NCBI GenBank assembly: GCA_964035545.1
Contig: OZ037765.1
Coordinates: forward strand, 10,674,698-10,738,697
DNA: 64,000 bases
Direction of reading: 5' to 3'
Source of the DNA: Bugula neritina
Lineage: Eukaryota > Animalia > Bryozoa
Under the pieces are notes generated by a model. It searched no databases. It was not told the DNA's origin and saw nothing but the letters and a program-made list of their open reading frames with translations. Position 1 is the first letter of the stretch; every line of letters begins with the position of its first letter. Below, piece by piece: positions 1,073-57,982 of the stretch. Both the position numbers and the translations under genes were made by a program.

Positions 1073-4000
1073 ATGATAGCAATGTCAGGATCTGACGAGC
1101 AAGAGTTTATAGAATGGATAAAAAGTAAAGCTGAGTCTGTTAAAGAAGCGAACATATATGAGTCGAAATCATGGCTTCTGACAGGGACTAGTATTTTTCC
1201 AAATAACATTTCTTTGAAGGTAAGTGCCTTCATAATTTTGTTATTGCATATAACTTATTATGTTATGCAGCATATGTGACAGCTATTACATATAGTCTGA
1301 GAAAAATGCATGCGGAATATTGGTGAAGTTGTTACATAGGCTAGTTCTTTATAGTATTTCTGTTTGACAATTTTTGTGTGTTTTCAATTTGTTTGTAGAT
1401 GGTGTCTTATATGACTTCAAAACAAGACAGGAATGTTGCCTTATCATCAATCACTTTGACATCAATGTGCGTAAAACTTGATTTAGTTGAATTTTGGAAG
1501 GATGTATTCTGGCATATTTGAGCTCTGTTGCTTACTTAATACCACAGGTTTATGCTGCCAGGGCTATACATAGTAAAAGGCTTAAATACTGTCATTGACT
1601 TTTCACTTGTAAATAACTCTAGTGAGACGATTTTACTTTTTTTTTCAAATCGTGAAACTGAAAATTAGCAAAGTTTTTATTTTTCATTTAAAGTAGATTG
1701 AGTATATAGGTGTTTATAGTTTATACACAAAACCTGGCATCTACTAGTATAATTCCTAATCTCTTACCAAGTATCTTGTGTAATAATTCATAGTGTGAAA
1801 ATGAAACTGGTTGATAGACTCATTACTTTACAATCTCAATAGTAAACTTATCAAAGTTTTTATTATGTTTTTTTATCTAATTAGCTCGACTCTCTTCTAA
1901 AAATCTTTTTCTTGAAAAGCTGCTTTTGATTGCAAATTTTATCATAAGTTGGTAGAATTAACACGCTTTTATTTTGTATGCATTCTTGAAGGCTTGATGC
2001 TTTGTTAGTTTCATATGTAAACACTGTGTAAAAGTAAAAGGTTAAAATGGTTTAAAATTCTGTTGGAAAAAAAAATATTACTGAAGCAGGCCTCTCTAAA
2101 TACATTTATGCAGTATAGGAATATCCAGAAGTATATGTGGTTAGCTAAATACAGTTTAAGGGTTGTGTGCCCAAGTAGTCTGGTGTTATAGTAACTTTTT
2201 GCATACATATCGTCTATTAATTTGGGCTCACCTGTTAATAACACTCGAGAAAACTAATATTCTGGTCTAATAACCCATATGGAATGGTCCAACTGTGATA
2301 GTTTATAGTCACATGATTAATTTAAGCAAGCTAGGTAATAGCTCTGTCCGTGTTTATATTATGTACTGAATTGTAATGAGTTAATGGAATACATATATGT
2401 GAAAAAGTGTACTATAGATCAATTCGGTTTCGGGTGTAACTTTGAAACTGTATTCGAGTTGTAGCCAACATGTTTTGGTATATTTTATTATTACATAAAT
2501 GTGACTTGCTTTAAACTATAAGTCACTTTTTACCCTATTTCTTTCAACACTTAATACAACAAAATTAATTGTTTTATTTTTTATGAAAATTTTCAATTGC
2601 AAAAAATATTTTGTTAAGTTTTTAATGTAACTCACTATTAGCACAATTTGTATAGAATGTTGTTGGTTAATTGTTCAGGCTAAACAATCCTGAGAACGAT
2701 TCTAATGTGGAGCTTCAGGAAGAAGTGAATTCCCTGCTGAAAAGTATGCTTTCCGATTGTACCTCACCAGAAGATAAAATTAACTCTGGTAAAACATTTG
2801 TTTCAATTGTGTCGGCATAATGCTTGATTCGATATTAATCTGATGTTTTGGCATGCATGTTAGACTTTACAAAACACTATTGCATATTGTCTCTCGTGTT
2901 GCTGCTTTGAAATTTAATGTTATAACATCATGATCTTGTCAACTAACCGTTTTTACTCGTGATAAAGTTTTGGATTAAATTACAATAGCCAGTTTAACAG
3001 AGCTGAGTTAAAGTCACAGCAAGTAAGTTAATGACCAGCCAAGTCAGGTTATGACCTAGTAAAGATAAATCAACTTCAAGTTAAATCCTGCACTGATTGG
3101 TCTTGACTCACTCAACTTGAATTGACCTGCAAGATTTTGAACAAATTCATTATTGTAAGAATAAATTGGTAGCTGCTATTCTATCTATTTTAAAATTTAT
3201 GTTTTTTAACTAAGAATGATAAATAACTAGGGAATAACTCATAACTTATGTGAAAAGGGCGTTAATGCACTGGCTATGGAATCTCTCAAATGAAACTGAA
3301 ATTATAGTTGATTGTTCCATTTACCTTAAGCCATCTTCATTAAATCACTATTTAACAATTTCATTTGAACTTTTCTGTAATTCCTGAATTTTAATTTCAA
3401 AAATTCGTAGCAAACCCATTACAATTCTCAATTTTAATCAAGCCAATTAGCTGAGTAAGTAAGTTCTCAATATTAACAAGTCAACTTGAGACAATAAAGT
3501 TCAAGATTTTGCAAGTACTCCAATTAAGTTACTTAAACTCAGTTCTGCATATAATCACAACAATAATTCCAAATAGTAAACTCTATCAGTCAGGTATACT
3601 AAGTTTATTATGTTTCAGATATATTTAAATGCATACCAAAAGATATGCAAGCTAACATATTGAAGAAAGCAGCTCTGGAATGTCAAGATGTGATAATGAA
3701 ATGTTCTCTCTTACTGCTTCTCATCAAAACTAACTCCTTCTACGCCAGAGAATACGGGGCAAGTATTTGATGGCTTTGCAGTTGAATCTTGTTGAAGTTT
3801 GTATAAAGTTGAAACAGTGGCTACTTAGTTGAGAATTTTGTAGTCTATATGAAACATTAGCAAAAATTTACTTTTTGCTGATAGTAAAAAGTTGGTATTT
3901 CATATTCCATAATTAGGTATTTCTGTAAATGTTGTAGCTCTTGCTGGTGGAAGCTCTTTTTGAAGCTGAAATAAAAGACAGTCCTAACAATAGAAATAAT

Positions 4001-34605: not shown

Positions 34606-36618
34606 TGTCTGAGAAGGCGGTCTAGATTTAAAAAATATAATAATTATGAGCTCTCACATCAACATGAATAACTGTCCTAAAAATGGTCAAAAACAATAAA
34701 TTGATTAAGCATGCATTAGTTATTGATTATGCAATGTTATAACTCATAGATTTTGATCACTAATGCCTTACAGCATTCATAGCCTACTTAAACTATATAA
34801 GAAGACTGTAACTATTGTTATAAATGAAAATTATCACTAATTTGTATTAGGATGCCTTAAAATAAATTTATTGTCATAACTTGAGAAAATAAAAAGTTTT
34901 AGATGCAATTACAACAAGCTCACACATACATACATATGCATCTGTTACATATATAGCCTAGCAAAATAAAATGATAAAAGAGCTGTGTTTCAATGATTAA
35001 GACTGGGAAATGTAACTTCTATAAAATTAGCATGTTTAAATTTTAAACAAGATAAATAAATGTTTTGCCAATCTATGACGCAAGTTTATGTATCTGTAGT
35101 CGGAATAAGCATGGCAGGTGATATTTAGCATGCATGCAATTTTATTAAGCAAATACTTTCAAAATCCAACACCAACCATGGGAATTAACAATCAATGTGA
35201 TCACGAATAAATATGAGCTTTAACTAGACATACTAGTAAGCAACAGCAACAATGACAATACTAATATGTGCAATAAAAAGATAATGGTAATAGTAGTAAT
35301 AGTCGACTTAAATGTTAGATATCTACAACAGCCTTCATTGATTGACTATGCATGCTATTACTAAGACTAACAGCAGAATTCAGTTAATAGGCAGCAGCTA
35401 TTTAAATGTCTGCAAACATTAATCATATTTATTTCCTAAAAACATACGTAGCTACATATATGGCGGTGATAGTTGTTACAATGCGCCCTTAAGATATTGA
35501 TATCACCTAATATTAGTATTAGTGACATCACTGTGATAGCTATCACTATAACTACCAAAAGCAAAAGCAAATTTAGTTTAGCCTGTTTGAATTATTATTA
35601 TCATTTCCACTCAGCTGTTTGATAATTTAAATAAATTAATGATTAGCATTGAAGATGGTGACTACTAAACCAAAGCCAACTACTTATATTCATACTGAAA
35701 TAATTATAGCTAAAGAAGTCGTTTTAACAGTGGAAGTTAGACTGTTATCTTATCAAACTTATTTTGTTAAAGGGTCACTATAGTGGTGAGTGCAAATGGG
35801 CATTAGCCTCAAAAATTATGTTACTGTAACTCACACTGTAAATGCAAGACTAATAGTAATTGGCCATGCCAACATAAAAATTAGATGATAGAAACTGTAA
35901 AACTTACACTGAAACAATGGCATGTTGATTCAATCATAAGAACTGTAAATTTCTGTACTTTGTCCTTACTACTAGCGCTTATTGCTACAATATGAGTAAG
36001 TTTAGTCATTTTATAAAACTTACTGACTTTTTAAATTTGAATTTCAAATTTCATATAATATTTGTAGAGTTTTAGTTTTAGTGGAAAGCAAAAAAGCTAC
36101 TTTTCCTTAAGCAATTTTAGCTATAAAATATCAATATTCCCATAAACTTCTATTATCCAAAATTATTATGACAATATAAATTATATCACTAATAATAATT
36201 TCAATATCAATATAGGCAACAAAGCAACAATAACACTATCAGTATCTGCATTAATAATTTATATTCCTTTGCAGTAAATGTCATAGTGATAGTTATATTG
36301 ATATTCAATATCAATATGAATATGAAATGAATGATTCATATTTATATTTTAATTTATATTGATCTATTATTCTTATTCATATATTCATAACACAACATTG
36401 CTGTTGCGATTGTAAATACTAAATTAAAATACTAAGTACTAAAGTAGTAATTTAGTGTAACTTGCATTCAATTATTTTTAATATTTATTAGACATTAGAC
36501 TCACAACTGTTAGACAAAGTGTTGCACTTACAGTTAGTGTTAGTTACTATCACTGTGACATTTACACAAGTTGAACTTGAAGTTCCAAGCAATTTACTTC
36601 TACTTTTAGAATTACTAT

Positions 36619-36677
36619 TAGTAATACTAATAGTAATACTAATAGTATCACTATTAGTATTACTATTAGTATTACTA
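36619..36677. repeat. Perfect 28-bp inverted repeat with 3-nt loop, built from TAGTAA/TACTAA hexamers
   Basis: TAGTAATACTAATAGTAATACTAATAGT-atc-ACTATTAGTATTACTATTAGTATTACTA. Confidence 0.9.
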
Positions 36678-38015
36678 TTACTATTAGTATTAGATTTACT
36701 TTTAGTCACCCGTACAGGACTACGACCGTATAGGTGTGAAAGAATTAGATTTACTTTTAGTGTGGCTGCAAGTGCAAGTGCAACACTAACAGTAACTGTA
36801 AGGTTTAACTCTAAGTTTTTAGGGCTTATAATTTATACTTATATGTAAGACATATAACTCATAGTAATATTCATAAAAAATATGCACGAGTAAATAACTA
36901 CAAAACTGACATGTAACTGAGATTATGCTTATTAAGCTAATTATTATAATTTGACTTATAAAGATTGGCTGAGCTATAAAAAAAAAAGAATTATCAATAG
37001 AATGTTCGGCTGCACTATCACGTGACATGATTTGCTAGCGAATCAGTTATTCATTTTCTTAGTAAATATCCGAAGCGTGGGTCATAATCAATATGATAAT
37101 CCCATTGTCTTGGACCAAAGATCTTCCTTACAAGGTAGATCAAAAATTCAGTTAGTAAAAATAAAAGTATGCGGTGCACAAATGGAAAAGGTATTTACAA
37201 ACTTCTGTGGAAAAATATTGATTGCATGCAACGTGAACATACTCTAATTCTAGAAAGTTATACTTATACTTATAGTTATTGATGAATAAAATTGAAAGTC
37301 AAAATGCCAATACTAATACTAATAGGCAATGGCACTATTCAAAATTCAAGTTCAATAAGTGAATGACAACTTATTATCAACGCGAACATTTATTGATTGG
37401 TAATATAATTATTAAAATTAGTCTTACACAAAATAAAAATGCTATTCATCATTTAAAAAATAGAAATCATAAGGACCATGTTCGTGATTTAAAAAACTAA
37501 GTCTGGTGTTTTCAAAAATGGTCATTTACTTTACAGTATGCTGATTTCTGGTGATTTATTATAAGGTCATAACTATAATTATATTATCAACGATGGATTG
37601 CAAAATATTCGTCGGTTTTTATTTAGCCGCGGTTGAACAACTATTATCTCCACTTTTTTATATTAGTATTATTTTGAGCATGTGAGTTTGTTGATATTCG
37701 TGTGGGTTTGTTACCGTGCATGCGGTTTTGTCGAATACACACGTGTCTATTAACGAATTCATATTTTAGCTCGTGTTCTCAAAATATTGATATTTACCAT
37801 TGTAAATGTAGTTTGCATAATGTTAAATTGAATTTTCACAGGCTTGTAAGTGCAAGTGATTTATGTTCTAGTAGTAGCATTTGTATCGTGGTTGGTCGCA
37901 ATTAGAGCGAGCAATTTATTATTCGTAATGACCAATGAGATATAGGGCCATTAAGATTATACCTAATTGCTACTAGACCCTCTAACGAATGGCTAGTTGT
38001 TCTTGCAATTCTCCG

Positions 38016-39475: not shown

Positions 39476-42400
39476 ATGGCTCGCCACAATCCTGATGATC
39501 CTGTCTTGGCCTATTTGGCTATAGACAGAAAAATGGCATTGGATGATCAAAAACGTCCATATGACGGGAAGAAGGCTTGCTTTGTGCCAGATAAAAATGA
39601 AGGCTTCGTAACTGCTGATATTGTGAGCTCTAAAGGAGATGAAATCACTGTTCAGACTGCTGCTGGGGAGGTGTGTACTTCTTTTATTGCTTATTTAATT
39701 ATGCTTATTTTTACACTATATTATGAAATATGCTGAAATGAAAATGCTTAGATTATAGCTTAAACTTACTCAAGCTTATAGTCACCATCCCTGCGAGAAA
39801 GCGCTTGATGGAAGGGGTTTTTGTTAAAGCAGTCTAAGGACTTATTCAGATGGGACACAGGGGCAATTATGACTGGATGCTCTTCCTAGCATCACCAATG
39901 GCCTTTGTCAAGGCTCAAACCTATAACTTAGTGCTTACTAGGCAAACACACTAAACCATAGATTATAGCTAAACTATTGGAAATGTATAAATGCATGATT
40001 TGTTGAAGTGGATTCTTACCTGTATATTTGATGTTATTTGTAGCAAAGAGCTGTGAACAAGGAAGATGTCCACCAAAGGAATCCCCCAAAGTTTGAGAAG
40101 ACAGAAGATATGGCCAACTTGACTTATCTCTCTGAAGCCGCTATATTGCACAATCTCAGAGAACGTTATCATTGCTGGAGGATTTATGTAAGTCGTACAG
40201 ACAATTCTGTTTCCATCAGAAAATGAAAATAGAGTAAAGGCTAAAATTTGCATCTGATAAAAGTTTATACCAATGCCGATTGATAATATTTTTAAATATT
40301 CACTATTTAATGTCAGATCAACCAACTTTCTACTTATGAGTTACATATAATTTATTGTTTTGTAAATATAAAAACCATAATTTAATATTCAAAGCAGCTG
40401 TAGAAAGCATGGCATTAGATGCATGGTTTAGTGTATAGAGCAACTGCATGGTAACAAAACACTTCAAACTGCAATTTTATTCTACATCTAGGCAAATAAA
40501 TTCTGCAGTATTTCACTAGATTTGGCTGGTCATCGTCCCCATGTGAGATTTTGTCTAGCCTCAAGTACTTATAAGTGATGATTTGGTGTATTCACCAGTA
40601 GTTGCAGCCATTAGGTTGAGAAATGCATACCTCACCGTATTAATAATCCTATTGATGAATGAAGTAAGAGTATGAGTTGGTAAGAATGGATGGGTTTGCA
40701 GGATTCTTTAGCCAGCTGGTTCTAAACATATGTGCCTGTTGCTATTCTATGTGGAGTAATTAAAGTAGCTCTCTGTCATGAACCTTTGATTAGGTGTATG
40801 TTTAAAGCTAAATGTTGAACATAAACACTGTAGCAGGGCATAATTAGGTAGAAAGTTAATTGTAGCTGGTATAATTACAGTAGACTAGGGGATAGAGGAA
40901 TTGCTGCTCTCATTACTGAATGGTTTTATGTCATAAATCCATATAAGGATGTAAACTGTTCTGTTATGAGAGATATAGTTTTAGCACCCCTTAACAGAGA
41001 TGCAATACCATATGTATACAGTATAGCACATATCTGCTTTAATTCTTTACCAAAGGTCAACTTATATTGCCTGGGCTTCTGCTCTCTTCTTAGATCCTTT
41101 ATCTATAATTCTTTGTAATGCCAGTCATAGTTTGTTCTTTTTATCAGCACTCCAGTCTTATTAATTAGGTAATTAGTTGAGACATGATAACCTGCATTCA
41201 TGTTCTCCAGGTCTTTTGTCATCTTAATAAGGGGAAGCAACTGCTTATCCATTGCCAGATAGCATTGCTTTTGCTGAAGGTGGGGAATTTAGACAGCGAT
41301 ATAATATGTTCAATCTGCTATGTAACACTTCTTTCAATGTCAGATTATAACTATAACTGTTATTGATAAAATTTTTCATTCTCAACTTGAAAAAAATTAC
41401 CAATGTTTTACTAATATAGGTAATTACTACAATCGTGTAAATAAATATCAAGCCAAACTTGTTATGTGTAAACTAAATCTCAAACAAGAGTGTCTTGTGT
41501 CACTGAGTGATCGCACAAATTTGATGAGCAAATGGATATTTGTAGATTTTCACAGCAAGCAATAAATACATTCTTACAATTTGTGTAAAAAGTTGAGTTG
41601 CTTATTACAAAGAGTATACAACATCTACCCAAAGAGCATATATAGGAATGGTGTGGCATTACACCTGCCTGTCTAATAACAATTTTATGATAATTTCAGA
41701 CATACTCTGGTCTGTTCTGTGTGGCGGTGAATCCTTACAAAAGATTGCCCATATACACTCAGGAGGTCATTGACATGTATAAAGGAAAGAGGAGAAACGA
41801 GATGCCACCTCATATCTTCTCTATCGCTGACAATGCGTATCATGACATGTTGCAAGGTACTTGATAGGTCTTTCATAAGTCTACACAAGTGGGCAATATG
41901 TCGCAATGAGACTAAACACTTGAACTTGAAAATTGTAACCTGGTATATATTTTTTATTTAAAAAAAACATATCATTTAAAGCTCAAATTATGTTCTATTA
42001 TTTTGCATGTAGTCAAAAATAATTTTTTTTATGACTTGTAAAAGTTTGCAATCTTTTATTTGAAACTATATTATATTTAGCTCGAGTAACTAAGTAATAT
42101 TAACTTTGTTTCGTGTCGCCCTATCAGTAATCATATGCTTTTTGTTGCAGACCGTGAAAACCAGTCCATTTTGATTACGTGAGTATCTTTAAACTCTACC
42201 TACTAAATAGCTGCACATTATATTCACACTATTGATTTGAATGTAAAACAAAAGAAGTTGTGTTGAATTAAATTATATTGTTAAGTCTCATAGTCATACA
42301 GCCATTGCCTTGTTACTAACTTTGTTTCATTTTGATGACTTTCATGCATGACCCATAACAATGTTCGAATGTTTTTTATTACCCGTCCTTTACTGCACTC

Positions 42401-51400: not shown

Positions 51401-54400
51401 GCGCAATTGTATAGCAGAACGCAAGAAAACTGACCTATTTGAGTAAGCATATACTTGTTTTGATAGGTTTGGAATGTGCTTTTGACATTAATTACTAATA
51501 AATATATGTACTAGTAGCAGTTCGGCATTTACTTTGAGCTATCTCTACCTTATATGGAGAGTAATGTTAGTCTATTAGTGGTATAAGTTTAGGGGTTTGT
51601 CTGCCATACAGTGTCATTTATTGATGAGAAGTCAATCTAGAAACTACATCTTTCGTTTTGCTATACATTCCATATTTTGCTTTAATATTACTTGTAAATT
51701 TCACAAAAATGGAAACGCTTTTACCTCACTTGAGAGGAGAAACAAAACTTGGCGAAACTGATTTTGCAGCTATTATTTTTGAGGTAATTGTACCACAGGT
51801 TATATTTTAATTGAAATGAACTATTTTGTTATCTTAAAAATACATGTTTTATTGTAGTTGGAAGATAATTTGGAGCGCGAACGAAAGCATCGAAATGATG
51901 TTGAGAAAGCCAAGAAGAAGGTTGAGCAAGATTTGAGGATGACTCAGGAGACAGTTGAAGACCTTGAGCGAGTCAAGCGTGACCTTGAAGAAAATTCACG
52001 AAAGAAAGATCAAGAGATCAACAGTCTCAACAACCGACTTGAAGATGATGCAGCACTCATTAATCAGCTTCAGAAGAAAATTAAAGAGCTCCAGGTCAGT
52101 TGCATGGTCTAATCTAAAGAGATTCTGTGGTGATTTTAGCTAATAGTTAGCATGACAATACTGCTCAGCTAATTATTAAAATAATCTTGCACTTACACTT
52201 GCTAAACACCTGATTCATGCCAACATTTTTAATCATACGTGTTGAAAAATAATAAGAAGGTTTAAGTAAACAAAATAAATTTTCTAAGTTTGCTTCAACC
52301 ATGCTATTGTTTGTTCAAGGTTATGTATGTTGATTAGCTGAAATATTTGAAGTTATCTTATAATTAGATGTCTTACATACATTCTTCAAGTGAATAAAAA
52401 GTGTATTTAATGTTAAAAAGTGTTAGTGTTGGTCGCAACGCCATCATGGACACTCAACTCAATGACGTTCTGAGCGAAAGTGAAGTGGATTCAGTAGGGA
52501 GTCATTCAGATTATGGTGGCAGCTTGAACAATGATTATTCCTTTCACCGATCTTCTAATGGCACTACTCTGTCACATATACAAGAGCATAAAACTCTTAA
52601 AAACTTGAGTGAGGATTATCGTGAACCATATTTGGATAATGAACAAGGAAAGAGGAAGCGTACAGACATTTTAGAAGAAAAATCTGCTCCCACGAATCAT
52701 ACGAGTTCTGCAATGAGCTACGAAAAGTATAAACCAAAACTAAATGACCGTCTTCCTTCTCAGTATAAGCATGTGTATATCAGCCCTAGGATATCAGCTC
52801 GTAGCAAACATGTTGTGAGAGATAGCCGGGAAGAAGAAACTATGCCTGTGTCGCAACGCACTAAGCTAGAAGTATGAGTTTCAACATGCCTTCTGCGTTT
52901 ATTATACTTTCACCAGTACCGGATTATATAGATATGTACAGTTCATGCATATTGCATGTGTAGATGTGCATTCCTATGGCGTATATATATACCTATATGT
53001 TACAGGCTCGCATAGAAGAACTTGAAGAGGAGTTGGAAGCAGAGAGAGCTGCCAGAAGCAAAGTAGAAAAACAAAGAAATGAATTACAAATGGAGCTTGA
53101 AGATCTTTCGGACAGATTGGACGAAGCTGGTGGGGCTACAGCAGCTCAGGTGGGTTTAAATTCTTATTTGTTATTCCTTTTTGGATTTTCTAGTAATGAC
53201 TTGTGACTTTTAGTAATTAGTTATTTTCACTTTGTTTGAAACGGCTTTCCTAAGTTGTTTCAAACATAAAAATTGGAGGCAGAAGAGCAATATTAATTGA
53301 ATGTTTGTTAGATTGAATTAAATAAGAGACGTGAGCAAGAACTGTTGAAACTCAAACGCGACCTTGACGATCAAGCCATGCAGAATGAAGCTAACACAGC
53401 TAGTTTACGCAAGAAGCACCAAGATGCCCTGAACGAGTTGTCTGATCAACTTGATCAAGCCAACAAGACTAAGCTAAAGTAAGCTGTCTGTTCATATCAT
53501 GATATATGTATATGTGGTGTTTAATAGCTTGTAAACTTTAGCTAATAAGTAAAAGTATTTGTAAAGTTCTTGAGATGCTTTTAGAGCCGATAAGGATCGA
53601 CAGCAATTGAAGGTGGAAGTTGAAGACTTGACTATACAGATTGAATCTGTCACCAAACATAAGGTAGATTGTAGCTGGACGGTTTTGTTTGTTATTACTA
53701 ACCCCAATACTAACCCATTTGTCATATTCACAGGGTAGATAAAGAGAAAAATGCACTTCATGCTGAACTGGAAGATATTGCTGCAAATGTTGATTTCTTG
53801 GAGCGAGCAAAGGTAGCATTTCCATTGCTATTTTGCTGACGCTATCGCTGCTCTATTTTCTATATAGAAGGTGTATAGTGATGCATGTTAATTCACTCTA
53901 GTAACACCAACTGTGCAATAGAAATTTTCACTTGTTATCTATGAGTGGTAATCGTCAAGGGACAGAGTTGATGAAAACAAGTTGTGTTTCTGTGCACATT
54001 TCACTAGGTGTTTGAAGCAGCAGTATGCTAGATTAGCAGGCTACAAAGACTGAAATGCAAATATAATAAAATCTTAAAGCTGCATGATATTGATGTTATT
54101 TATAATGCAATTGTTGTGTTGATTACTTATTTTAACTTACTTATTTCTTAATAAGGTAATGTTCATAAATGATGCAAACAAATAATCTTGTTTGATATTA
54201 GCACTGGTCAAAGTTGTGCATGTGTGGGCTCTTTTGCTGTTGTATTAGATAGTGTTTGTTAAGGATTATAAATAGAAAGACTGTCATTTTAGTAGAGAGT
54301 ATGTTAATGTATGAAAACCATATAGGCTATACATGTTTTCCTGCTTTAGGTAAATGCTGAGAAGACAGTCAAAAGTCACGAAGCTCATTTGGCTGAACTG

Positions 54401-57400
54401 CAAAGCAAACTTGAAGAGCAACAGAGAACTATCCTCGACCTCAACAGCAGCAAGAGCAAGATGCTGACAGACGCTGACGAGATCACCAGTCAGCTAGAAG
54501 ATGCTGAGTCTCAAGTTGCCCAACTCAGCAAGGTACTTTTAACTGCATGAAATTTGTCAGATTTGTGTTCAGTAGCCAACTTTTCTAGTTATTGCTGTAT
54601 TTTATCTCAATTTAATTTTCTAGCTTAAAGTCAGACTTCAAGGTGAGCTAGACGAAGCAAGGCGTTCTCTGGAGGAAGAGAGCAGAAGCCGTTCAAAACT
54701 TGCCACAGATCTTCGCAATGCTCAAGCTGATGCTGATCAGCTTAGAGATCAAGTAGAAGAAGAAGCAGAAGGAAAAGCAGAGGTGAGAGTGCATCAGCTA
54801 TTTTTCAATTTTGTTTAAAATAATAGTTTGATACTCTAGTTAGCAAGTTATTAATTATACATGTGCACATGTTGAGAACTTATATGATGATGTTACCAGG
54901 CACAGAGAGCTTATGCCAAGATACAAGGAGAACTGCAGACCTTGAAGTCTCGAATCAACAGTGGAGAATTTGGACGCAGTGAAGAAGTGGAGGAGCAGAA
55001 GAGGAAGTTGCATGCTCGTATTATGGAAATGGAAGAGCTCTTGGAATCTGCCAATGCTAAGTGCGGCTCATTAGAAAAAGCCAAATCTCGATTGAGCATG
55101 GAGCTGGAAGATATGATGCTGGAAGTTGAGAGATCACAGGGTGCTGCTGTTGCTGCTGAGAAGAAACAGAAGCAGATTGACAGATTGCTGGCTGAATGGG
55201 AAGCCAAGTACAGAGATGCTCAGATGGAGTTGGAAGCTGCCCAGAGAGAAGCTAGAGCTTATAATACTGACATATTCAGGATTAAAGCACAGCTGGAAGA
55301 AAGCACAGATGTTATTGAAGGAATGAGACGTGAAAACAAGAACTTACAAGATGAGGTTCATGACTTGTCAGAACAACTATCTGAAGGAGGAAGAAGTACT
55401 CATGAGATGGATAAACTCAGACGCAAACTTGAGGCTGAGAAAGAAGAGCTACAAGCTGCTTTAGAGGAAGCTGAATTAGCTTTAGAAACTGAAGAAGCTA
55501 AAGTCATGAGATTCCAAATGGAGATGAGTACGACTAAGCAAGAGATTGAGCGACGACTCCAGGAGAAAGAAGAAGAGTTTGAAAACACCAGACGTAATCA
55601 TGCACGAGCTCTAGAATCAATGCAAGCCACGCTAGAAGCTGAGACTAAAGGAAGATCTGAATCTATGAGGCTGAAGAAGAAACTTGAGCAAGATATCAAT
55701 GAGCTAGAAGTTTCATTAGATGTGGCCAACAGAGGGCGTGCTGATGCTGAGAAAGCAGGAAAGAAGTATCAGCAGGAGCTGAGAGATCTTCAGGCTGCTA
55801 TCGAGGAAGAGAACCGACAGCGTGAGGAATTGAGAGAACAGCATTCGCTGTCTGAGAGGCGCTGCCATATGATGAATGGAGAGCTGGAGGAGATGAGAAC
55901 TCTTCTGGAGCAGGCAGAGCGAGGTCGAAAGAGCGCAGAGTCTGAGTTGATGGAGGCTGCTGACCGAGTTAATGAACTCTCTGCCAACAGCTCTCAGCTT
56001 TCTTCTCAGAAAAGAAAGTTGGAGCAAGATCTGTCTGCAATGAATGCTGACCTGGAAGAAGCAACCAATGAAGTGCGAAGTGCTGAAGAGAGAGCTCGCA
56101 AGGCTGCCTCAGATGCTGCTCAACTTTCCGAGGAACTCCGCAATGAACAAGATAGAGCAATGCACTTGGAGAAACTGCGCAAGACTCTGGAGAACCAGCA
56201 GAAGGATCTGATGATGCGATTAGATGAAGCTGAAGCAAATGCTCTGAAGGGAGGAAAGAGAGCTCTGTCAAAGATGGAGGAGAAGGTAAGATGGCAGCTC
56301 TCACAATTGAGTATGGTAGAGTTTGACTGGGACAAGCTTATTATTTTTGATGCAACATTTATGTAATGGATTCCCATTCTATATTTGAATATTATGCTAA
56401 TTCTTTAAAAAACTTAAACTACACTCGAATATTAAAGTTCTCATAAATCTTTAGTCATTATGTGATTACCCATAGTACAAAATTACGCTCTAATTTTATC
56501 AGATAAGAATGCTGGAGGCTGAGCTGGATGCTGAACATCGTCGTCATAGTGAAGAGGTAAAGAATGCTCGCCGAACTGAAAGAAGACTAAAGGAGTTGCA
56601 ACTCGCTGCTGAAGAGGATAAGAGAGGTCAAGACAGGCTCACTGAACTGATAGAGAAACTTCAACAGAAGATCAAGACATACAAGCATCAAGTAGAGGAA
56701 GCTGTAAGTTATTTAGCACCAAAGTTGTGGATAACTATGTATGATGGTATTCTAAAGTATTTGTCGAGTTTGAATGTCAAGCCAATGACTACATATACTC
56801 TATTATAGGAAGAGATTGCGGCTGTTAATCTTGCTAAGTATAGAAAGGTGCAGCATGAGTTGGAAGATGCTGAATCTCGTGCTGATGAGGCTGAAAGCAG
56901 CATGGCCAAGCTGAGAAGTAAGAGTCGGGCTAGCCTGAGTATTGGTAGAGCTGGAGGTGCTGGAGCTTTATCAGTAAGTACATACCATTTATAAACAATC
57001 GGTAAATCAGTCTTATATCATGTTCCAGTTAGAACCTTATTAACCTAGACACTAATATGTTACTGTAGTTGTTACTGTATCTTTGTCTTCTAGGGGTCTA
57101 TGACTTTTGATTCAAGTAGTAGTAGTATGAGGAAGTCTTTGGGAAGTCCATATCAGGTGTGTGTGCTGCTGTTTTTGTGATGGCTTCTGCGAGTTTGTGT
57201 CAGTTTAAAACATGTTTTCTATTTAATCAATTTTTTATGATTCACTCATTCAGCAGCTGATTCTGCGGAAATCTGTTGATGTTTATTTATAGCCGTAGGT
57301 TTTTCATTTTGAATTGTAATTTCTCTAGAGCGGAGGTTATTCAATGACATCTAAGTATTCTCGCAGAAGTGAATACTCTAGTGAAGATGCATCTACACTT

Positions 57401-57982
57401 TAAATTTAGGTAGTTTATGCTTTGTGGGTTTCACTTCTCTGGTAGCAGTATGTAGATGTAGTAGCTTCCTTTCTTTACTGGCTTACAATGCTATACTTCA
57501 TTGTTTATGTACATAGTTATCTACTTTGTACATACACAGTATGGTATTTATGCTCAAGAAAGTTGTATGTAGATTTTCGCTATGGTTGCTTTTTCACGCT
57601 AAGCTCAATTTCTTACCAAGCTCTATTTGACTTAAGAAAATTATCCAGACTTTGCTTGGAAAGTTTTCACAGCTCTCCAGTGCTAGGCCATGTGTTAGCA
57701 TTTTTTTGCCATATAGTCAGCAATAATGGTTCATATACATCTACAGCATGCACTTTTCCGGAGATGTGGAGAGGAAATCATCATATTTGTGAATCATGAC
57801 ACTACCTAAAGCTTATCATTACCTCTGTTGATTTTTATTATTATATAATAGTTTTGCATGGTGTTATGTATTTCCTATTTTAGCCTGTCTTGGGTTCAAC
57901 TGGTGGAGGCGTTACTAGCTACCGGTTTAGCTCAACTCGAACAACCAACACCTCTCATCATTCAACCGAGGAAGAAGAATAA
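39476..57982 (+). CDS. Mhc: Muscle myosin heavy chain (class II, sarcomeric type) with extensive alternative splicing
   Basis: Start [20 protein letters not shown]; P-loop GESGAGKT; switch I NNNSSRFGK; switch II DIAGFE; [12 protein letters not shown]; IQ/lever region to WQWWKLY..VKPLL; long heptad rod; final exon ending STEEEE* at 57982. Exon phases join with GT-AG boundaries. Confidence 0.97.
39767..39970 (-). mobile_element. Degenerate tRNA-derived SINE in a myosin intron
   Basis: The minus strand shows A-box-like TAATCTATGG and B-box-like GGTTTGAGCC, then GCTAGGAAGAGCATCCAGTC, which resembles the AGGAAGGGCATCC core of V-type SINE central domains. Confidence 0.45.
40939..40948. promoter_or_regulatory. 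CArG box (SRF-type site) in an early myosin intron
   Basis: CCATATAAGG fits CC(A/T)6GG and is the reverse complement of the site at 51548. Confidence 0.35.
42807..43288 (+). other. Mhc: Mutually exclusive exon pair A: P-loop plus loop 1 (42807-42915 and 43180-43288)
   Basis: Both exons are 109 nt with the same phases: [36 protein letters not shown] versus [36 protein letters not shown]. Confidence 0.93.
44502..44849 (+). other. Mhc: Mutually exclusive exon pair B (44502-44600 and 44751-44849)
   Basis: Both exons are 99 nt, phase 1-1: [33 protein letters not shown] versus [33 protein letters not shown]. Confidence 0.92.
47517..48114 (+). other. Mhc: Mutually exclusive exon pair C, helix/strand after loop 2 (47517-47604 and 48027-48114)
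   Basis: Both exons are 88 nt: [29 protein letters not shown] versus [29 protein letters not shown]. Confidence 0.92.
51548..51557. promoter_or_regulatory. CArG box about 0.9 kb upstream of the internal catchin-like exon
   Basis: CCTTATATGG, a canonical CC(A/T)6GG. Confidence 0.35.
52446..52871 (+). CDS. Internal alternative first coding exon giving a headless catchin/myorod-like myosin-rod isoform
   Basis: Stop-free 142-codon, Ser/charged-rich, non-heptad ORF inside a rod intron. It starts in a strong context (ATCATGG) and ends at a phase-0 donor GAA|gtatga that joins in frame to exon 53006 ([14 protein letters not shown]). Nearby upstream AGs are out of phase for cassette inclusion. Confidence 0.8.
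53585..53812 (+). other. Mhc: Mutually exclusive exon pair D, S2/LMM hinge (53585-53663 and 53734-53812)
   Basis: Both exons are 79 nt, phase 2-0: [26 protein letters not shown] versus [26 protein letters not shown]. They are separated by a 70-nt intron. Confidence 0.9.
57094..57982 (+). other. Mhc: Alternative non-helical tailpiece exons of the myosin
   Basis: 57094-57156 encodes [21 protein letters not shown] (63 nt, phase 0-0). 57329-57409 encodes [24 protein letters not shown] and is followed by a donor. 57884-57982 encodes [32 protein letters not shown]. Confidence 0.75.

Follow-up and report, generated by a model that had tools for sequence, protein, structure and literature searches.

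A probable catchin-type first exon within a muscle myosin heavy chain gene of the bryozoan Bugula neritina

Catchin, or myorod, starts from an alternative first exon inside the myosin heavy chain (Mhc) gene of molluscs. The present locus raises the question of whether a muscle myosin gene outside the molluscs carries the same exon. The catchin exon is known from scallop, mussel, oyster, Aplysia, Biomphalaria and Lottia, and from no animal beyond molluscs (Kollmar and Hatje, PMC3912159). The catchin systems are those of Argopecten irradians, Mytilus and Crenomytilus, and the exon is also found in Crassostrea Mhc2, Aplysia, Biomphalaria and Lottia Mhc6 (PMC3912159, PMC12040844). In reviews, myorod/catchin figures as a protein particular to the catch muscle of molluscs (PMC4410989, PMC12040844). 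Our literature search, which covered few subscription journals, found no catchin outside molluscs. The window analysed here, a stretch of 64,000 nucleotides, comes from Bugula neritina, a cheilostome bryozoan and not a mollusc. Its mitochondrial genes are in the order known for B. neritina, down to the unusual place of trnK between two non-coding regions. An earlier note on this DNA had proposed a catchin-type protein encoded within the myosin gene, and a wider range of the system should the animal not be a mollusc; such an extension, to a bryozoan, is probable.

The gene in the window is a striated-type muscle Mhc with a start codon near 39478; among proteins of solved structure, the muscle myosins of insects and spiders are closest to it. 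An open reading frame at 36519–36848, shortly before the promoter region of Mhc, is of low complexity and rich in Leu and Val; it is probably a simple repeat read in the wrong frame. The features that concern the headless product are as follows.

52446–52871, + strand: catchin-type alternative first coding exon of 142 codons, intact in three B. neritina haplotypes
52770–52871, + strand: conserved last 34 codons of this exon, with pN 0.06–0.19 against saturated pS between species
52824–52826, + strand: Ser127, the 16th residue before the junction, at the position of mussel myorod Thr141, with basic residues at −2, −6 and −8
53006–53149, + strand: first shared rod exon, beginning ARIEE, from the RNA joint 52094/53006 and a Myosin_tail_1 match
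53312–56973, + strand: rest of the rod exons, from RNA-contig joints and translation
57094–57982, + strand: alternative tailpieces, either 57884–57982 (32 residues) or 57094–57156 plus 57329–57403 (45 residues), both in RNA contigs

The host intron of the 142-codon exon is 911 bp long (52095–53005). The exon runs from the ATG at 52446 to a phase 0 donor, GAA/GTATGAGT, at 52872. The acceptor at 53006, TTACAG/GCT, is likewise in phase 0; it is used by full-length Mhc and is predicted to be used by the catchin exon. The eight exons downstream encode exactly 828 rod residues, and the predicted headless products are 1002 or 1015 residues (115–116 kDa), depending on the tailpiece. The proposal of an intronic frame of 142 residues that joins the rod in frame, adding 828 residues and a tailpiece, is exact as far as reading frame and splice geometry go. 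An ATG-to-donor run of 142 codons occurred in none of 5000 Markov-simulated introns and in none of 274 real windows of 911 nt, indicating that the run is not due to chance. A longer product of 154 residues from an upstream in-frame ATG (52410) was considered and rejected, since the N-terminus of the homologue P0124 aligns with the start at 52446.

RNA contigs, placed from position 52000 onward, confirm the joints downstream of 53006, both tails and both members of a mutually exclusive exon pair. The pair consists of two 79-nt rod exons, 53585–53663 and 53734–53812, also present in loci L003, L007 and L012, and is probably the known hinge-region cluster. Both tailpieces (56973–57982) are rich in Ser. 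From a loose RNA end, one more joint may connect about 57409 with 57884, past the stop codon of the longer tail.

The N-terminal part of the 142-residue product contains 22% Ser/Thr and 17% hydrophobic residues. No Pfam family was found for the exon, and the ESM Atlas likewise returned nothing. The AlphaFold model was of low confidence (pLDDT 54), a result that is compatible with disorder and proves little.

The resemblance to molluscs lies at the end of the exon. In molluscs, the catchin exon closes with a conserved segment beginning 28 residues before the junction (PMC3912159, Fig. S3). The last 28 residues of the Bugula exon (52788–52871) are in ungapped register with this segment, 11 of the 28 being identical to scallop and 9 of the 28 to mussel, as counted by eye on the printed alignment of that figure. 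A run of seven residues is identical to scallop and lies equally far from the junction; the final two residues are shared as well. The junction-anchored binomial probability is about 5e-6 for scallop and 2e-4 for mussel at a background of 8%. Profile searches with the exon returned no mollusc sequence, and the similarity to molluscs is confined to these 28 residues. All searches used the exons one by one.

Thr141 is the phosphosite of mussel myorod (PMC4410989). Its alignment with Ser127 was obtained by a hand count along the sequence, in which Thr141 becomes 142 when the initiator Met is included. Ser occupies this position in all eight lineages or genes; one allele, P0127, has Ile there, and Ser is found in L032, which belongs to that cluster too. 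By analogy with myorod, Ser127 may be phosphorylated.

Several further properties agree with catchin/myorod. At the DNA level, the exon is placed as an alternative first exon within the Mhc intron that holds it in molluscs, and would join the ARIEE exon. The rod comprises 828 residues plus a tail here and 830 in catchin, and the unique N-terminus is of low complexity and of similar length, 142 residues here and 156 in the mollusc protein. The terminal signature is in register, Ser stands at the Thr141 position, and the host Mhc has many mutually exclusive exons. Other properties differ. The block that precedes the signature in molluscs is replaced by a bryozoan-specific one, two Mhc paralogues of Bugula bear the exon, and one intron further upstream there is a candidate second start exon. 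The animal belongs to another phylum. Catch muscle contains myorod and myosin in equimolar amounts; the Bugula protein is a prediction.

Homologous exons were found in six other lineages, five through a HMMER search of representatives and the sixth through a profile word search; a word search with the exon itself gave matches from the same species only. At the homologue loci for which DNA was available, the exon lies in the same Mhc intron, has the same two residues before the GT and is followed by the ARIEE exon. For one more homologue, the neighbouring called genes carry Myosin_tail. From 82–86% rod identity and the tree, we infer that the six lineages are bryozoans. The pN and pS values between species indicate strong purifying selection on the last 34 codons.

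The Bugula genome also contains a second full-length muscle Mhc, with fewer introns, on contig C2 at about 9,183,500–9,195,200 (L022, L024, L025). It displays 70% identity to the window gene in the long rod exon, and has its own catchin-type exon of 119 codons in the same intron (L022 1483–1839). The signature is at an equal distance from the donor in 8 of 8 exons, from the window, the six lineages and the C2 paralogue. The exon is absent from L007, where the intron is 335 bp (3107–3441), and from L003/L011, where it is 397 bp (L003 483–879). L007 groups with the window gene in the tree. These bryozoan-like Mhc loci from metagenomes thus appear to represent lineage-specific losses of the exon. 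Conservation in close relatives, on which the earlier note had made its proposal depend, is accordingly seen in the six lineages and the C2 paralogue and not in L007 or L003/L011. Such natural losses permit a comparative test against muscle type.

The same intron in relatives, the selection, the 28-residue match and the position of Ser127 at the Thr141 site together make it most likely that the 142-codon exon is an orthologue of the catchin exon. The catchin-type first exon implied by the earlier proposal is likewise upheld at the DNA level by the shared intron, phase and rod length, by the signature with its Ser and by purifying selection. An orthologous exon under selection in bryozoans would move the origin back to at least the common ancestor of molluscs and bryozoans, separate from the catch of bivalves. 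The exon would then predate both the bryozoan–mollusc split and the duplication of Mhc in Bugula, with some lineages having lost it, and a headless catchin-type protein is probably older than molluscs. What is new is most likely the presence of a catchin-type exon in the phylum Bryozoa, outside molluscs.

We regard it as probable, with good confidence, that the first exon of catchin/myorod has its bryozoan orthologue in this exon, which through an internal promoter and a phase 0 splice would give a motor-less rod of about 1000 residues. The transcript would start from a promoter within the Mhc intron, and its first exon would splice in phase 0 onto the rod. The product would comprise a disordered, Ser/Thr-rich N-terminus, the basic 28-residue segment with Ser127 as phospho-acceptor, and then the distal S2, the LMM and a tailpiece. 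Myorod forms copolymers with myosin, and its binding to actin and to myosin is phosphorylation-dependent (PMC12040844). By this analogy, the headless rod of Bugula would co-assemble in thick filaments and dilute the motors there; phosphorylation would govern its contacts with actin or myosin, and only a few muscles would use it. The comparison reduces the functional core to the 28 residues that surround the phosphosite, a direct target for peptide and mutagenesis work on the debated role of myorod.

The RNA data bear on how much of the isoform is made. Three RNA runs from three studies gave no contig on 52200–52999 and join 52094 directly to 53006. The earlier note had singled out the junction 52871/53006 as the RNA check; it is absent from the contigs of all three runs, and the joints of the downstream chain are present. 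In one run the Mhc depth is about 270, and intronic pieces were kept at a depth of 5–8 beside it. The headless isoform therefore probably amounts to less than a few percent of Mhc in that run. Contigs lose rare forms and the tissues and stages of the runs are unspecified, so the absence limits abundance and does not refute the exon.

The missing RNA contig would also suit a true catchin orthologue that is silent or decaying in B. neritina, with only its relatives still using the exon. Losses in other lineages would agree with such decay, and so would variation within the species, where 12 of the 28 variable sites in the exon are synonymous, a borderline excess (p 0.007–0.08). Against the orthologue reading, the middle third of the exon changes fast within the species, with 15 of the 16 amino acid changes falling there. 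However, the three haplotypes, which include the DNA run X17 (with L009/L010; used as a further B. neritina haplotype and not as RNA), contain no stop or indel in the exon, whereas the flanking intron has many indels. Codons 108–142 show no amino acid change within B. neritina, the 250 bp upstream of the exon are nearly invariant, and the loss of rare forms from contigs weakens the argument from RNA. We consider decay quite unlikely.

A second possibility is that bryozoans acquired a first exon independently, at a phase 0 intron suited to it, so that the likeness to catchin, a basic kinase-site motif, is convergent. Drosophila did recruit a first exon elsewhere in the gene for its myosin rod protein (MRP), and the Bugula gene is evidently able to recruit start exons, as the 25-codon exon described below suggests. 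The profile searches without a mollusc match and the lack of a recognisable mollusc motif block upstream of the signature also fit an independent origin. Against it stand the use of the same intron, the seven consecutive scallop-identical residues at the exact junction distance and the same final two residues, and convergence is thus very improbable. MRP itself resembles the Bugula product as a headless Mhc isoform from an internal promoter, but its start is at another place, some 260 residues upstream, and it has no conserved N-terminus (PMC3912159). The start of MRP is the first exon past the light-chain-binding domain; both Bugula start exons are several exons downstream of that place. Mhc8 of Lottia gigantea also gives a rod-only product beginning at the catchin position, yet this tail-only gene stands by itself and does not have the long unique exon (PMC3912159).

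That the exon is an internal cassette inserting about 140 residues into full-length myosin, as its phase 0 donor in an intron with phase 0 ends and the unmapped transcription start might allow, was rejected as hardly tenable, because 0 of the 3 AG dinucleotides in the open stretch 52398–52445 give a phase 0 acceptor, every homologue begins at Met, an insertion of disordered sequence would interrupt the coiled coil and the mollusc counterpart is a first exon.

Two sequence elements near the exon, and two further features one intron upstream, are relevant to the putative internal promoter.

52362–52385, + strand: AATTAG and an MCAT-like site (CATTC[C/T]), a pair located 54–106 nt upstream of the catchin ATG in 4 of 4 orthologous upstream regions
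52423–52438, + strand: the Inr-like TTAGT (52423–52427) and an 11-mer of the earlier note, the 11-mer polymorphic and unconserved
51548–51671, + strand: CArG box (51548–51557) and MCAT site (CATTCC, at −43 from the ATG), preceding the 25-codon exon
51709–51783, + strand: candidate headless start exon of 25 codons with a phase 0 donor, from its conserved length and selection

AATTAG and the MCAT-like site each have a shuffle probability of 0.03–0.11 per region, values that are optimistic for elements chosen after viewing the alignment. The pair is likely to act as internal promoter elements of the catchin exon. TTAGT does lie upstream of the ATG as had been noticed. The 11-mer occurs at both 37891 and 52428, as claimed, but its reading as a signal shared with the main promoter was rejected: it is altered in another B. 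neritina haplotype (L009/L010) and absent from all other species. Random window pairs have a word of at least 11 bases in common in 6% of cases, or in 0.4% for words equally G+C-rich. Similarly, the CArG box cited in favour of a catchin promoter is present at 51548–51557; it tracks the 25-codon exon one intron upstream, and was rejected as an element of the catchin promoter. CArG matches in the window number six, near the 4.2 expected.

The 25-codon exon would join 51858, giving a predicted rod of 964 or 977 residues. Exactly 25 codons from ATG to GT are also present in L009, L007 and L015. Between the window and L009, of the same species, there are 5 synonymous and 0 other changes; between species, pN is 0.19–0.25 against a pS of about 0.73. 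In three species the CArG box is at −161, −190 and −140 and CATTCC at −43, −67 and −42 before the 25-codon ATG, the CArG box having a shuffle probability of 0.013–0.019 each. The two start exons are distributed separately. The window gene and L015 have both, L007 has the 25-codon exon without the catchin exon, and the 25-codon exon is absent in L003 and the C2 paralogue. Our literature search found no description of this exon. A candidate second start exon suggests that headless rods may be a more general means of tuning thick filaments.

A bolder reading would take the two internal promoters of this one bryozoan Mhc gene as muscle-type, driving an ancient catchin and an undescribed rod capped by 25 residues (CArG/MCAT), both in tonic muscles with catch-like holding; catchin-based filament regulation would then be ancestral to lophotrochozoans and not a bivalve invention. 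This we consider doubtful. The exon had earlier been taken as a hint at catch-like muscle, and that step does not follow, because gastropods also have the catchin exon (PMC3912159), it is contested what catchin does in catch (PMC12040844, PMC7589332), and in our literature search catch turned up in no report on bryozoans. Some bryozoan-like loci are, moreover, without the exon. The catch muscle system is marked by twitchin with PKA-regulated sites, paramyosin-rich filaments and catch physiology, and catchin/myorod is abundant on the thick filaments of such smooth muscle.

Two minor observations concern the assembly. A near-identical copy of cox1 lies on a chromosome (C6, about 11,174,000–11,175,400), likely a nuclear mitochondrial insert. 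The small cox1-bearing contigs C214, C73 and C17 resemble foreign organisms left in the assembly.
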